From Dimorphilus gyrociliatus (lineage: Eukaryota > Animalia > Annelida), in the NCBI GenBank assembly GCA_904063045.1, contig CAJFCJ010000020.1, positions 1,480,916 to 1,544,915 of the forward strand: a stretch of DNA of 64,000 nt. Direction: 5' to 3'. The notes beneath the pieces are model-generated. The model did not search any database. It was not told where the DNA came from and worked only from the letters and a program-made list of their open reading frames with translations. This document shows, piece by piece, positions 15,601-23,961 of the stretch; position 1 is the stretch's first letter, and each line of letters opens with the position of its first letter. Position numbers and translations under genes: made by a program.

Positions 15601-17132
15601 ATGATTACGCTGCTGGCCGTTTTCTTGCTGCAGTGTCTGCTGTTTAGTTTACAGCAGCCGAACTTATTGGAGGACGGAATAGGAAAGAGGATAGTAATTG
15701 AAGCAAACTATTCATCGCCAATGTAAGTTTTCTTTTTATATCTTTTTCCTTTCTAAGTTTTAAAATTTGAAGAAAATTTTTGGCAACTAATTTTTATCTA
15801 GGTATCACTTACTACTGAAAAAAGGCGACGACAAGAACCGTTACGCATTCATCATGTGGACCTGTGAACAGACTACTCGATGGATAATCGATTGGAGTGA
15901 TGTTAATAACGGTATGTTGTATGTCAATTATATATTATAGATACGAGAAATAATCGATATCGAATCAATTCGCCTACGCAGACGGAAGCGATTATCGCAG
16001 TATCAAGCTCTTGGAAAGTTCGGGAATGGAGGGCAACGATTATGCCATCTTTTACCATTCCCCCCTACCAACTACTTCCAACACAAGCTACTACTCTATA
16101 AGGTTTTTCGCCATTCGACGCTCTGTGGTTCAGTTGCTCGTAACTTCCTCAGAACTAGATGCCACAAATCTTCTCAGACCATTTCCTGCCAACGCTCATC
16201 TTAATGTAATGAACGTGGGAATGCGTTCAGCGACGGCCGTCTGGAAGGTATATAATGTCGATTGGGTAAACGTTACATATTGTCCGACAGTGACGGCAGG
16301 ACGTTCAAACTCATGCGAATTTGCCGTGTCTAACTGCGTCTCTAACGGGAATACCCACACATGGCGCAATCTGGTGGCAGGCGAGACCTATTCAGTCGAC
16401 CTGTTTATCAAGTATAAACCCAGCGGAATAGCTCGCCATCTGGCCGCTTGCCCTTTTCAAACTAAAATGAAAGATGTTGAAAGGCGCGTTCTACTGAGAA
16501 GCGGACAAAGCATAAAAGGGCAGATGAACGGAAGGAATTTACGTAACGCTTATTTAATTTCTGGGGATGTCCTTCAAATACAAGCCTGCAATCGAGTAGA
16601 ATTATACATTGAAATTTACAACGACCGATCGGAGCTTATCGCCAGACGATACGTGACCGGGTTAGACAGAATATTGGGCGCCCGTCTCGTCTACGTCTAC
16701 GGTCCTCCCGGCGCCATCTATCGGCTTGGTGTTGACTCCAAACTTCCAGCAACACCAAAATTAACTATAGCTCGAAGCGTCAAGTGTGAGATTGTTCGAA
16801 AGGACAATATACGTTTAGTCACAGTTATACTTAGTTGGTGGGGAAAGGGCCAAACTCGTTATTGCTTGTATGTTCGTCGCAAGCCTCGGAGGCCCATGCA
16901 CTATAGCCTAAAGACGTTTCAGATAGAAAATGTTTGTCGAGCTCCTAAGTCTGACCAATGGAAGAGAATGAAATGTTGGAGAGCGAAATCGAAAAAGAAG
17001 TTCTTGGCTCTAGTCAATAAGTTAACAGAAGGTGTATCATACGATTTCGTGGTAATGGCCACTCGAAAGAGACGCACATCTGTCTCAAATGTTATTACAG
17101 TTTTCACTAAAAGCTGCCAGAAGTCCACTTGA
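15601..17132 (+). CDS. NDNF: Neuron-derived neurotrophic factor-like secreted protein (NDNF/nord), two FN3-like domains
   Basis: Signal peptide MITLLAVFLLQCLLFS. Exons are 15601-15722, 15802-15911 (RYAFIMWTCEQTTRW) and 15982-17132. Motifs GMEGNDYAIFY, NLVAGETYSVDLFI, IQACNRVELY, QTRYCLY and KLTEGVSYDFVVM...VFTKSC line up with the human NDNF layout as I recall it. Confidence 0.85.
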
Positions 17133-17804: not shown

Positions 17805-20759
17805 ATGAGTAGGAATAAGTTTAACCTAAAATTACCTCCTACACAAGAATCTGGCGTTGTAGACAGTGATGCTGAAAAGTGAGTAGTGGTTGATTAAAAT
17901 ATTTTAGTTATTTACATGAGATGTACGGATTTATTTTGCAGTAAGTCTAACCCAAATCTAGCAGCTTTAAGGACGAAACTCGATGAGCTGAATTTGGATG
18001 ACAAGCAGAGAAATCGATTAGAACACTTTTTAAGTGACAAAGCAAAAATCGGTGAGGTCCTTAATGCTGAAGATTTTGAGAAAATGGGAGAGTTAGGAGC
18101 TGGAAACGGTGGAGTTGTGTGGAAAGTGAGACACAAGAACAGTAAGCTCGTTATGGCCAGAAAGGTAACATTTGTAAACGGGTAAAAAGTCAGTGTCCCT
18201 ATCTCCAAGTAATCGATTAATTTATTCCCCAGTTAATTCACCTAGAAATAAAACCGGCCATTAGGAACCAAATATTTCGTGAACTGAAAGTGCTGCACGA
18301 GTGTAATTCACCATACATCGTGGGATACTATGGCGCATTCTATAGCGATGGCGAAATTAACATTTGCATGGAGTACATGGTTCGCGGAAGAATTATTGAA
18401 ACTTAATATATAATGGTAACAAGAGACGTTCTTTTCTTTTTTATACAGGATGGCGGTTCTTTGGATTTAATATTGAAGAAAGCCGGAAGAATTCCCGAAC
18501 CCGTCTTAGCAAAAATTAATTTATCTGTACTTAGAGGGTTGATTTATTTGAGAGAAAAACATTCAATCATCCATAGAGGTACGTCATTAGACTTGCTACT
18601 CTCTACTTTGTACTTATATTTTCTTATCCGATGCCTCTTCTGTCAGATGTCAAGCCCTCGAATATTCTCGTTAACTGCGGTGGCGAAATCAAATTGTGTG
18701 ATTTTGGAGTTAGTGGGCAGTTAATCGATTCAATGGCCAATTCATTTGTCGGTACTAGGTCCTACATGTCTCCCGAACGGTTACAGGGCTCAAAATATTC
18801 AGTTCAATCTGATATATGGAGTTTTGGATTGTCTCTGGTCGAGTTGGCCATAGGAAAGTATCCCATACCGCCGCCCTCCGACGAGGAACTTCAACAAATT
18901 TTTGGACAAAAAGCAATCCAGGAACATTTAGAGGCGTCAAAAGAACCAAGAAAACTGGAAGGTAAGAGAGGTGCAGGATTTCCCATTAACAATTTTTTCT
19001 GCGAATTTTCTCCTATGTAAATAATGTGGCTATTCAGCATTGAATTATGAAAATCTCTAAAATGTAGCGGTATACGCAGGCTGTCCAGGTGACGTGGATG
19101 TCATTACGGGGGATGGTCCTCTTCCGATGGCGGTTTTCGAACTGCTAGAGTATATTGTCAATGAGGTTATTCTTGAATGTAGATCTTATATGTAATATAA
19201 TTTTAAAATGCATGCGACTGTACGAATGTTGCAATCGTGGCTTAATCCTCCTTTTTGCGCAGTCAAAAAGCGAATAATTCAAGATTATCTTAATGGAAAT
19301 AAGAGAAACAAACAAACTCCAATCATAGAGAGATGAAATATATTCCAGAACACATTATTATAATTTTCTTTAATTATTATTGTTTTAAGAAAAAGAGCAT
19401 CCATTAGAAAAAAATTGCCCGTTTTATTTGCTGCAGGTGGTGGTAAAAGTGCCTTTGTGGGTGATGGGGCAGATGGGACAAAGCCATTGGCCATTTTTGA
19501 GTTGTTAGATAGAATTGTGAACGAGGTAAAGAAAATGTATATTAATACTAAAACATCTTTTAAAAAAACTATTTACAATAATAGAGATGAAACGAAAACA
19601 ATAATACTATAAAAGTATTCTGTATATATTCATATCTACTGTATTAGGGACATATGTTTATATACAGTGTTTTGAAACATTTATAACATACACACACACA
19701 AACTTATCTATATATATATATACTAATATATAAATTTATATTAGTATATTACATACGCACATATTATACCATTCTCAATGAGCTCAACCTATTGATATTT
19801 TCAGAGTTTATCAACAGAGGCACTAGGCCACTACTTGTTCGCTTTTTTTTCTTTTTTTTTAATTTGTAACTTGTTGTAATGTCGCTTTAGATGTTTGAAT
19901 CTTCAACGAGAAGGAGACACATAATTAGCAATATATGTATATATACATATATGTATATACATATATATATCTACCGTATATATTTTTTATTCACTTACAA
20001 TAGATTATTGTAATATTTATATATATATATATATATATACATATTTATTTATATATAGATTTATATATATATATATATATATATAATTATAAATATTAAA
20101 AGAAAAAAAGCACGCAAATGAAAGCTTTTTGTATTATTATTTTACTTTAATTCAATATAACCATTTCCAAGATGCGCAAAATAGTAAAGAGTAAAATAAG
20201 GCATTTTGTAAATTATAAGAATCGAATAATTAAAAAAAAAAAAGAAAAAAAAGAGAGAAGGATCTGTTCTTTATACGCGACACTTGAGAATGGTTTAATC
20301 CTGTAAGATCAGCCATTGAAAGTAACATTTATTTATATCTACAGCCGGCTCCTCGTCTGTCTAGACAGTACTTTTCAACAGAGTTTATAACTTTCGTCGA
20401 AACCTGTCTGCAAAAGAATCCACAGGAAAGATCAGACTTTCAAACGCTACTGGTAAGGGTTTCTTAATGACATTTCTTTCTTATTTCAACTATGTAAATA
20501 TTGCATAAATGATCTAGATATATAATACTGATTATTTTTACGCCAACAAATATATATATATATATATATGTATGTATTTACATATAAAGTGTATATATGT
20601 GTTTGCGCAGTACCTACAAACGATGTTTGTTAAGCATATAGTTATTTCTATTTTCCTCTCATTTAGAACCATGCATGGTGTAAAAAGACTGAAACTGACT
20701 GGGCGGATATTAATTTCGCTAATTGGGTTGGAGGAATTATTGAGCTGAATGAATCCTAA
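17805..20759 (+). CDS. MAP2K1: Dual-specificity MAP kinase kinase MEK1/2 (Dsor1-like)
   Basis: Motifs [96 protein letters not shown], and AIFELLDxIVNE/PAPRL. Last exons are 20345-20452 and 20667-20759 (stop TAA). Confidence 0.97.
19068..19165 (+). other. MAP2K1: MEK mutually exclusive exon A ([33 protein letters not shown])
   Basis: AG acceptor at 19066-67 and GT donor at 19166. 98 nt, phase 1 in and phase 0 out, open frame ending in the MEK alphaG motif. Confidence 0.85.
19437..19525 (+). other. MAP2K1: MEK mutually exclusive exon B ([30 protein letters not shown])
   Basis: TTTATTTGCTGCAG acceptor and GTAAAG donor. 89 nt, same phases as exon A, homologous 3' half. Confidence 0.85.
19935..20085. 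repeat. Interrupted (TA)n microsatellite cluster in the MEK intron
   Basis: Several TA runs visible. Confidence 0.9.
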
Positions 20760-22104
20760 AAGATGAGACAGACTGTTGCATTCCAACACTGCACTGTTAA
20801 AAAATTATCACCCATTATACTATTGTATAACTTTTACATTATATAACTAATTTTAAAAAGTAAATTTTCTTTTTCCACACCGAAACAATTATTGGGAATG
20901 TTTCGTATGATATACACAAACTTTGTATGTAAGTTTAATATAAATAAAACATATATTTCTATTTACGTTCAATTTATATGTATATATTCTCTAAGACATG
21001 CTAATCATTGATATACTAAACAGTATATATCTTAAACTGTACTACATATAACAAAATGATATATATATATATATATGTATATGTATATATATATATTTAT
21101 ATTTATATTTTTTCCTTAAAAATTGCAAATACAAAATATTGAAAAAGAGAAATATTTCAAGTTTAATAATTTCATTCAAAAAGTTATTGTCCGCCGTTTC
21201 TCTATCGGTATTGAAGATAATTTTGCCAAGGACGATCATATCGTTAGCGAATTTCAATCGATTTGAGAAAAGTACTTCTCTTCAATCCTGTAATTTTTTT
21301 GTTTGTGAATTGATACGATACTATATTAAATTCTGTAACAATTTAGGTTCAATAAGATAGATCTTACAGTTTCTTTAGATGCGGTTAGCGTATAGTATTT
21401 AACAGGCAATAAGTGATTGGATCAAATTTACAAACCAAGAGAAAAATATTAGACCAGCTAGGAAAACGCAAATAACGACTCTTCCCATATAGTAGCTGTA
21501 ATTGTTTTCTTTATTTCTATTTATGAAAAATCTATATTTAACTGAAGGGGGAAAGGTTTTCTGAGAAAGTTAAAAAGAGAAACACGACTATAGAATGAAG
21601 AAAATATCGATTATAATGTTCAATCCTAATTTGATGGATGAACAGAACAAATCGTTTCCAATCTTAAGAAATCTATTACACATTTTTAATTTATCGATGC
21701 AAAACAATAATCTTGTATTTATCTATTTATTATCATAATCATAACTAGCAGCTGAATCCTCCTTTCCCATCCATCAAAGTTTTTTAATTGGTTCATCATT
21801 TAATCTGCTTGTGGTTTTATATTTCCGTTTCTATTTATGCTCTCCTTATATTCCCATTCACTTTCATACTTGACATTGTAAGCTCTCCTAAGGTGTTTAT
21901 TTTTTTTATAATCGTTTTCTGCCCCCCTCTCTCTTATGGTAACTACGAAATGCATAATTTTACCATGGCGAAACTATCTGCAGACGTGTACTAAAATCTG
22001 TTTATCAATTGTATTGGAAGTGAAATAGGACAAAAAAAATATTAATCACGACAGTGACCTCCTTCAAGAACGTTATGTTGCAGCTTAGAATGAAATATAT
22101 ATCA

Positions 22105-22630
22105 ATTCCTTATAAGTAACACATCAAGGTGGTTTAAATCATAAAGCATCATAATATGAAAGTACAATTTATTTATATCTATAGCCGGCTCCTTGTCTGT
22201 CTAGACAATGTTTATAGCCTTCGTCAAAACCCGGCTGCAAAAGAACCCAAAGGAAAGATTAGACTTTCAAAGTCTACTGGTAAAGGTTTCCTAATGACAT
22301 TTTTTTCTTATTTCAAGTATGTAAATTGGGCAGAAATGGTCCAGATATAGATATATGATTATTTTTACGCCAATATATATATATAGATGTATTTACATAC
22401 AGTGAATATACAGTATATCTAAGCTTTGCATTATTCATTCAAATGATATTTATAGTTGTTTCCATATTTTTCTTATATTGTATAGTATCTAAAAGGCTGT
22501 GGAAAAGAACAGAAGCTGTCATAGAGGATAATAATTTCGATAATTGGATGATGGAAGGAACGGTTAAGCAGAATAAATTATAATAGTATAGTCAGACTAC
22601 TCTGGTCCATTATAAATATTGTATATATTG
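22105..22630 (+). pseudogene. Decayed tandem duplicate of the last two MEK exons with their introns and part of the 3'UTR
   Basis: 22185-22279 aligns with exon 20345-20452 but carries a net 13-nt deletion that gives PAPCLSRQCL*. The following intron (GTAAAGGTTTCCTAATGACATTT vs GTAAGGGTTTCTTAATGACATTT) and a diverged last exon (RLWKRTEAVIEDNNFDNW vs [18 protein letters not shown]) are also copied. Confidence 0.85.
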
Positions 22631-23027
22631 TATTTAGCCTATTTAACAGGTTAGGTAATAATTGATCCTACATATATTTCATAGAGAAAACAATTAAGAG
22701 AGTCTCTGTGTATTATGATTGATACTATTCAGGATGACAGAACTAAACTGGACTTTCACCCTACATATATAAATATAACAATATACTGTATATTGCAATA
22801 ATATACTGTATATACTGTATATATAATGTTTATGTTATATTTATTCAAATATATCAAACATATGAAGAATAATTCATATTTTCAGATAATTAACTTTTGT
22901 TGCTTTCTTTAAAAACTTCTAAATACAAAGTATTTGACAGTGAAATGTTAAGATTAAAAATATGGTGTGTAACAGTTAAAGACTTAAAATTATAGATAAG
23001 AAAAATTTAGATCAAGAAGTTGGATGT

Positions 23028-23961
23028 TCAAGCTATTTCTCCATCGTTATCGAAGACTCGTTCTCCAAAGACAACATTATCAACGAGTTTCAAGCGATCA
23101 TCAGAAGTGTTCTTGTTCATTCTTACAACTTTAATCTGTTAATTAATTTTAGATTTTATAAGATTCTATACATCGACATGAATAGTATAAACTTACAGTT
23201 TCCTCATCTTCAGTTGGCGTACAGCAACAGGCAACGAATGAGTGGATCAAATTGACCAACCACGCGAAAAACAATAGCCCAACCATGATAAAACCATTAA
23301 TACATCTTCCTTTGTAGTAGGATCCGTGGAATTCTCTATTTTCAGATCTGAATCCAATAGTTACACCAAGGGAAAAGAGTGCGCATGGGACAAGGTAAAG
23401 AAGATGAATAATGAAAATAACGATAGATGCAATCTTCAATCCCAATTTTCTATGACCAAGGGTTGAACAGTGAAAACCACTTCCCAAAATTCCGACAACA
23501 AAAGTCTGAAAAAAGTAATTTGATTGATATATCGAAAAATTATTCTCTATTTCATTCTATGAACTTACAAGAACTATGCTCGGGGCAACGCTAATCCAAT
23601 GAAGTACATGCTTTTCGATTTGATTTGAGTCGTAACGCGATATAGCGCATTTCTTCATCATCTCTTCAAACCTGTGACGATGTTCAACTAGTTCCTTACC
23701 AAGTCCTTCAAATTTCATTCTTTCATGCATTTTGTTCATCTTATCTCCTTTCAGATGTTTTGCCAAAGGTAATAGAAACTTTCTTTCCAAATGTTCGCCA
23801 TCATTGTCTCTTCTCTCCTCACTTATATCAAAAATATTATCTTCGTGTCTACATTTGCTCTGGTTTCCAGTTATTTGGAATACATTTACCAATAAACATG
23901 TTAACAGGCCTGTAGCAATAACAAAATGTAAAATGCTACCAACGCAAAAACACTTCGCCAT
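23028..23961 (-). CDS. Orphan four-transmembrane protein with large first loop and juxtamembrane Cys cluster
   Basis: Three exons join in frame: MAKCFCVGSILHFVIATGLLTCLLVNVF...VLHWISVAPSIVL/TFVVGILG...KIASIVIFIIHLLYLVPCALFSLGVTIG...INGFIMVGLLFFAWLVNLIHSFVACCCTPTEDEET/IKVVRMN...DGEIA*. Donors are GTAAGT. Confidence 0.8.

Follow-up and report, generated by a model that had tools for sequence, protein, structure and literature searches.

A putative mutually exclusive exon pair in the MEK1/2 gene of the annelid Dimorphilus gyrociliatus

The MEK1/2 gene and its duplicated exon

We analysed a 64,000-nucleotide (nt) stretch of the genome of the tiny annelid Dimorphilus gyrociliatus (contig CAJFCJ010000020.1, positions 1,480,916 to 1,544,915, forward strand), referred to here as the window, in which the single MEK1/2 gene of the species occupies positions 17805-20759 on the plus strand. 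Two homologous exons, 6a and 6b, sit between exons 5 and 7 of this gene and are the subject of this report. Spliced translation gave the following exon structure.

17805-17878, +, MEK1/2 (MAP2K1-like) coding exon 1
17942-18164, +, coding exon 2
18233-18379, +, coding exon 3
18449-18578, +, coding exon 4
18647-18961, +, coding exon 5, ending in G before the gt with one base left over (phase 1 out)
19080-19165, +, exon 6a (upstream, CPG type), 86 nt, phase 1 in and phase 0 out, AG/GT sites
19437-19525, +, exon 6b (downstream, diverged canonical type), 89 nt, phase 1 in and phase 0 out, AG/GT sites
20345-20452, +, exon 7, phase 0 in and out
20667-20759, +, exon 8, including the stop codon, with the C-terminus following ...FQTLL

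Assignment of the gene as a MEK1/2 (MAP2K1/2) ortholog is supported by several features of its sequence. Exon 5 encodes the MEK1/2 activation segment S-x-x-x-S, the N-terminus carries the basic ERK-docking motif, and between ...PIPPP and ...FELL lies the insert, found only in MEK1/2, that precedes helix alphaG. The named matches in the homolog lists are MEK1/2, and a maximum-likelihood tree groups the predicted protein among annelid MEK1/2 sequences with support of 100/99. The product of exons 1-5 is identical to the N-terminal ~330 residues of the NCBI model DgyrCDS12619 (CAD5124327.1, P0337).

When searched alone, the peptide of each alternative exon matched only MEK1/2 chains in the PDB, aligning to human MEK1 residues ~303-320, which comprise the end of the proline-rich insert and helix alphaG. 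Exons 6a and 6b encode the same residue at 10 of the 14 helix codons and differ from one another at many synonymous positions, and sequence comparison supports their origin as tandem duplicates. An initial annotation of this DNA had described two homologous exons, phase 1 in and phase 0 out with GT-AG sites, whose joint inclusion or joint omission would shift the frame, and the sequence agrees on each count. Because the lengths of both exons are 2 mod 3, making them incompatible in frame, exactly one of them must be used: in spliced translations, inclusion of both leads to a stop inside exon 6b, and skipping of both leads to a stop seven codons into exon 7. With one alternative exon each, the spliced products are 391 and 392 residues long. 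The PDB matches, together with conservation of both exons in a sister species and in three other phyla, show that the pair is no chance resemblance.

Two exon boundaries in the initial annotation required revision. It had placed the upstream exon at 19068-19165 (98 nt), and the acceptor at 19068 is indeed in frame, adding AVYA, but the acceptor at 19079/19080 is in frame too and gives an 86-nt exon that reads on after ...KLE. Because an 86-nt G-C-P-G exon is present in Owenia, Lamellibrachia, Mya and Babylonia, we take 19080 to be the conserved acceptor and 19068 to be at best an alternative. Exon 7 ends at 20452 rather than at 20453. The splice sites of exon 6a are weak, with a poor polypyrimidine tract at the acceptor and the donor GAG/gttatt, and those of exon 6b are strong, with a strong polypyrimidine tract and the donor GAG/gtaaag.

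The public Dimorphilus model is wrong at the exon pair. DgyrCDS12619 joins both exon peptides in series, passing from exon 6a through ~27 nt of intron and an odd internal splice to exon 6b; its last residues are ...IVNER, and exons 7 and 8 are missing from it. In Lamellibrachia the two exons are fused in a similar way in model P0273 (L006 28971-29821), and the Owenia model uses the canonical exon only, the upstream exon having been missed. The structure given above corrects the Dimorphilus reference gene model and flags the same error in Lamellibrachia.

Constraint on the exons and candidate RNA elements

For comparison we used a Logan contig (L001) from a close relative, hereafter the sister species, which covers the locus at ~80% nucleotide identity and whose introns can be aligned with those of the window. 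Codon changes between the two species were distributed over the exons as follows.

Exons 1-5, 296 codons: 97 synonymous and 17 non-synonymous changes
Exon 6a, 29 codons: 3 synonymous and 0 non-synonymous changes (3 differences in 86 nt)
Exon 6b, 30 codons: 0 synonymous changes and 1 non-synonymous change, D to E (1 difference in 89 nt)
Exon 7, 36 codons: 5 synonymous and 0 non-synonymous changes

The deficit of synonymous changes in exons 6a and 6b combined has a binomial P of 2.8e-7. Identity is also high in the sequence leading into the exons, at 93% over the last 60 nt before exon 6a, 88% over the last 40 nt before exon 6b and 90% over the last 100 nt before exon 7; the intron stretches between these conserved flanks are 44-61% identical, and the neighbouring introns overall 44-80%. 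Regulated alternative exons typically show such a combination of conserved flanks and synonymous constraint, and the comparison supports the retention of both exon copies under purifying selection. Neutral decay of one copy, a prospect raised in the initial annotation, is not what the synonymous and non-synonymous changes of the orthologous exons indicate, both exons being constrained. Over exon 7 and the 100 nt before it (20245-20452), identity to the sister species is 90-95%, as against ~85% for exons 1-5 and lower values for the neighbouring introns, which suggests that further splicing control elements adjoin the cassette near exon 7.

Two candidate elements for the choice between the exons lie in the flanking introns.

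19807-19833, +, conserved intronic island, able to pair with exon 6b over its first 29 nt (19437-19465), with a helix that would extend by 1 bp to 19834
19209-19214, +, UGCAUG hexamer (Rbfox-type motif), 44 nt 3' of exon 6a, in an intron stretch that is 78% conserved, and kept in the sister species

The predicted duplex between exon 6b and the island has an energy of -31 kcal/mol, which none of 1000 shuffles reached, and its arms are reciprocal best partners within the region. The same helix closes both the minimum free energy fold and the centroid fold of 19400-19833 (z = -3.7). Both arms are invariant in the sister species, within an intron that is otherwise 44-60% identical. Elsewhere in the conserved flanks, no pairing of one block with another reached a z stronger than -2.6, and no second selector was found.

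We regard the UGCAUG hexamer near exon 6a as a lead only. As a pan-spiralian Rbfox element it was rejected, being present in both Dimorphilus species, Lamellibrachia and Mya and absent in Owenia, Lineus and Babylonia. Also rejected was an inverted repeat that could mask the donor of exon 6a (19158-19178 with 19277-19297), which is not conserved in the sister species. The long intron 3' of exon 6b (819 nt) and the introns downstream contain low-complexity runs of (TA)n and (TATG)n, at 19900-20110, 20540-20570 and 21060-21100.

Distribution of the pair and the difference between its members

Following a suggestion in the initial annotation, we compared the locus with other annelid and spiralian MEK genes, scanning seven further genomic loci for both exon types and applying a pattern scan and tblastn to the taxa with a single exon. 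The same pair, with the CPG exon upstream and the canonical exon downstream, each ending ...IVNE/GT, is present in Owenia (L005; CPG exon 16430-16515, canonical exon 18934-19022), Lamellibrachia (L006), the nemertean Lineus (L007), Mya (L011) and Babylonia (L012). The CPG exon is 86 nt long in Owenia, Lamellibrachia, Mya and Babylonia, exactly as at 19080-19165 of the window, and the canonical exon is 89 nt long in Owenia, Lineus and Babylonia, as at 19437-19525, and 95 nt in Mya. By these comparisons exon 6a of the window is of the CPG type and exon 6b is a diverged member of the canonical type. In Branchiostoma, Limulus and Schistosoma japonicum, pattern scan and tblastn found a single canonical exon and no second one. 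Since the pair occurs in the same order across annelids, nemerteans and molluscs, the duplication predates the split between these phyla.

Protein collections hold both forms. The RefSeq isoforms X1 and X2 of Mya arenaria (P0268/P0274) and of Babylonia areolata (P0229/P0230) differ at this exon only, those of Saccostrea (X1 versus X3) use different acceptors for the CPG exon, and in Arion vulgaris each exon type has a UniRef entry of its own. For many other molluscs and for Lingula, models with one exon type or the other are annotated, among them single-type models in Crassostrea, Mytilus and Aplysia, and the Lingula X2 isoform suggests that brachiopods probably have the pair too. The novelty that the initial annotation had seen in the cassette is largely lost, in that the Mya and Babylonia models already annotate the exon swap with the same cassette in the same genomic order. 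These mollusc and Lingula models are automatic annotations, and Dimorphilus differs from them in its diverged canonical exon and in a public model that fuses the pair. Our literature searches found no published description of a mutually exclusive exon pair in MEK, which does not prove that none exists; apparently no paper describes the pair, which automatic annotation records correctly in molluscs and which annelid models get wrong.

In Lineus longissimus the alternative exons are separated by an intron of just 71 nt (L007 21374-21444), and at this length steric exclusion could add to the exclusivity imposed by the reading frame.

Another way to view the pair is through what each member contributes to the protein, for which we compared spiralian sequences, 19 of the CPG type and 40 of the canonical type. 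The CPG type has the form ...K-G/A-CPGDFQV..., with a type-specific consensus of GCPG-F-V-TGDGPLP followed by ...LEY. The canonical type reads ...N-R-N-S-F-x-F-P-x-P-P-G-S-DGPRPMAIFELLD-Y/F-IVNE, its consensus being R-x-S-F...DGPRP...LD(Y/F). Helix alphaG is near-constant across both types (PMAIFELL-E/D-YIVNE), the residue that corresponds to human D315 being E or D. What consistently separates the types is the stretch of 12-20 loop residues that precedes the helix, together with one residue, the CPG type having GPLP and the canonical type GPRP. An [RK]x[ST] motif occurs in the loop of 35/40 canonical sequences and 0/19 CPG sequences, and an [ST]P motif in 17/40 and 0/19 respectively; a loop cysteine is found in 16/19 CPG sequences, as against 12/40 canonical ones, and the CPG loop is acidic.

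MEK meets RAF and KSR face to face, and helix alphaG forms the core of that contact (PMC9068654); the initial annotation had held that the exons swap this contact helix. The part of that claim that concerns the end of the proline-rich loop applies generally. Four helix changes between the types (M/L, V/I, E/D and Y/R, with exon 6b carrying L, I, D and R) are found in Dimorphilus only, and because the helix is near-identical in both types across the other spiralians, a helix swap is at most a local Dimorphilus feature. In the proline-rich insert of human MEK1, PAK1 targets S298, T292 is the ERK feedback site, and MEK1 and MEK2 differ there (PMC3398258, PMC2172784). Aligned by eye to the G-R-P-L-S of Branchiostoma and human, the canonical R-x-S would be the counterpart of the S298 PAK site. 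Judged from these motifs, the cassette probably acts mainly by swapping regulatory motifs in a flexible loop.

Interpretation, known parallels and surrounding sequence

The explanation that we consider probable is that one exon of the single MEK1/2 gene was duplicated in tandem in an early lophotrochozoan, and that the resulting pair has been retained in Dimorphilus as mutually exclusive exons. Each mRNA would take either exon 6a or exon 6b, and the products with both exons or neither, which meet an early stop, would be expected to be removed by nonsense-mediated decay, so that the frames themselves would enforce the choice of one of two. The resulting MEKs of 391 and 392 residues would differ only where the proline-rich insert ends and in helix alphaG. 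In functional terms the exchange may amount to a short-motif swap in a disordered loop, the canonical form offering R-x-S and often S/T-P, and the CPG form an acidic stretch with a conserved cysteine and no such sites; one isoform could then accept PAK-type and ERK-feedback inputs that the other ignores. The choice in Dimorphilus may be regulated at the RNA level, given the weak sites of exon 6a and its conserved flanks, and the stem formed by the first 29 nt of exon 6b with the intronic island would loop out exon 6b and so favour exon 6a.

Other accounts of the pair fit parts of the same evidence. One exon, most likely exon 6a with its poor polypyrimidine tract and GTTATT donor, might be a dead relic of the duplication that is never spliced in, leaving the gene with one protein, and the Owenia annotation with its canonical exon only would agree with this. 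We consider it very unlikely nonetheless. Exon 6a differs from that of the sister species at 3/86 nt, all of them synonymous, beside introns that are 44-80% identical; six other species from three phyla have the CPG exon intact, RefSeq or UniRef isoforms of many molluscs, Lingula and Lineus use it, and a relic of such age would have decayed. Because the exons and their flanks are so strongly constrained relative to the sister species, a relic in the course of decay is ruled out. Less credible still, to the point of being close to negligible, is the inclusion of both exons in one mRNA, as in DgyrCDS12619, which would yield a MEK carrying helix alphaG twice. CAD5124327.1 has both peptides in series and Lamellibrachia P0273 likewise, but direct joining of 6a to 6b shifts the frame, which the public model keeps only by reading through ~27 nt of intron and using an odd internal intron. 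That model also omits exons 7 and 8, and with them conserved kinase subdomains that all other MEKs possess, and the mollusc isoform pairs take one exon or the other.

A third account accepts that both exons are used and holds that the two proteins are biochemically equivalent, the pair being kept by a division of expression between tissues or stages. With helix alphaG near-identical between the types in most species, with both loops predicted to be disordered, and with strong synonymous constraint and conserved flanks pointing to selection on splicing control, this has more to recommend it than the two foregoing accounts, and yet we think it improbable. The type-specific loop motifs, GCPG-F-V-TGDGPLP in one and R-x-S-F...DGPRP in the other, have been kept across phyla for a very long time, a persistence that is difficult to account for unless the protein itself has been under selection.

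Several observations weigh against a regulated exon switch in Dimorphilus as we have set it out. Use of both exons in this species is deduced from conservation and from other species, and no transcript-derived Dimorphilus MEK isoform was among the protein-collection matches: a search with exon 5 for junction-spanning fragments returned only a genomic read-through open reading frame (ORF) of the sister species (P0054) and unrelated taxa, and a region-restricted query with the Lamellibrachia CPG exon returned 18 candidates with no transcript-derived Dimorphilus isoform among them. Exon 6a, being weak at both splice sites, may be rare. Synonymous changes are scarce in exon 7 as well (5 in 36 codons), so the constraint may in part be regional. 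The stem is best treated as a candidate, since its invariant arms offer no covariation and no competing partner was found. The phosphosite interpretation fits the other spiralians better than Dimorphilus itself, whose canonical exon has lost R-x-S (GKSAF). AlphaFold models place both loop types as disordered (predicted local distance difference test, pLDDT, < 50) with no structural difference between them (Crassostrea X2 for the CPG type, Argopecten X1 for the canonical type); the predicted disorder fits linear motifs and adds no further evidence.

Going by the age of the phyla involved, the pair would be more than 500 million years old, and ERK signalling specifies the spiralian embryonic organizer. 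An ancient mutually exclusive pair can on this footing be extended to a bolder proposal, which we offer tentatively and hold to be rather doubtful as a whole: that lophotrochozoans have had for >500 million years a MEK exon switch between forms with and without the PAK and ERK-feedback phosphosites of the loop, a division like that between MEK1 and MEK2; that the stem sets this switch in Dimorphilus; and that the isoform ratio could control spiralian development. Since ERK signalling specifies the organizer, the ratio could be a control point of development that has gone unrecognised.

The mechanism is not new in kind, mutually exclusive tandem exons being well known in kinases. JNK exons 6a/6b and the p38alpha forms CSBP1/CSBP2 are mutually exclusive, tandem-duplicated kinase exons. 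FYN exons 7A/7B are a further case (PMC9741552). The MEK pair resembles all three in its tandem duplication inside the kinase domain, its one-of-two choice, the partner or regulator surface that is varied, and its antiquity. It differs from them in lying at the mitogen-activated protein kinase kinase tier, in affecting the proline-rich insert and helix alphaG, and in an exclusivity imposed by the reading frame (both exons 2 mod 3). Clusters of mutually exclusive exons can be controlled by competing or looping stems in the RNA (PMC6071210), and the predicted long-range stem between an alternative exon and a conserved intronic element is similar in design; unlike in those clusters, only one helix was found at the MEK locus, and it involves the exon's own 5' end in place of intronic docking and selector sites and shows no covariation.

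Within the MEK family the closest parallel is with the vertebrate paralogs, which diverge most in the proline-rich insert, the same insert that the spiralian pair varies. Phosphorylation on T286 and T292 is reported for MEK1 but not for MEK2 (PMC3398258). The vertebrate variation came from gene duplication and the spiralian variation from exon duplication. The vertebrate intron falls after the S298 equivalent, so the vertebrate exon homologous to 6a and 6b is shorter. MEK1b, a splice variant of human MEK1 with altered specificity, carries a 26-residue deletion in kinase subdomain 5 (PMC8699841); it too is an alternative MEK isoform, but by deletion elsewhere in the protein and not by exon substitution. 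With the cassette in annelids, nemerteans, molluscs and probably brachiopods, a large share of animal diversity would have two MEK variants per gene, differing in an insert that bears regulatory phosphosites in human MEK1. Laboratories of evolutionary developmental biology that use MEK inhibitors in spiralians gain from this a concrete question about isoforms.

Finally, we record some features of the surrounding sequence. A gene with a Ribosomal_L22 domain stands head-to-head with MEK in Owenia (L005), Lamellibrachia (L006), Lineus (L007) and Branchiostoma (L008), an old microsynteny; upstream of MEK in the window there is instead a single-exon ORF of 373 residues (16011-17132), which is conserved in the sister species. 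Downstream, a 1.83-kb tandem duplication (20294-21495 and 22134-23320) copies MEK exons 7 and 8 together with the 3' end of the neighbouring gene on the minus strand (ORF 23149-23487). In the second copy, exon 7 (from 22185) has lost 13 nt and contains an in-frame stop, and exon 8 (ORF ending at 22583) has diverged. The region that is duplicated in the window occurs only once on the contig of the sister species.

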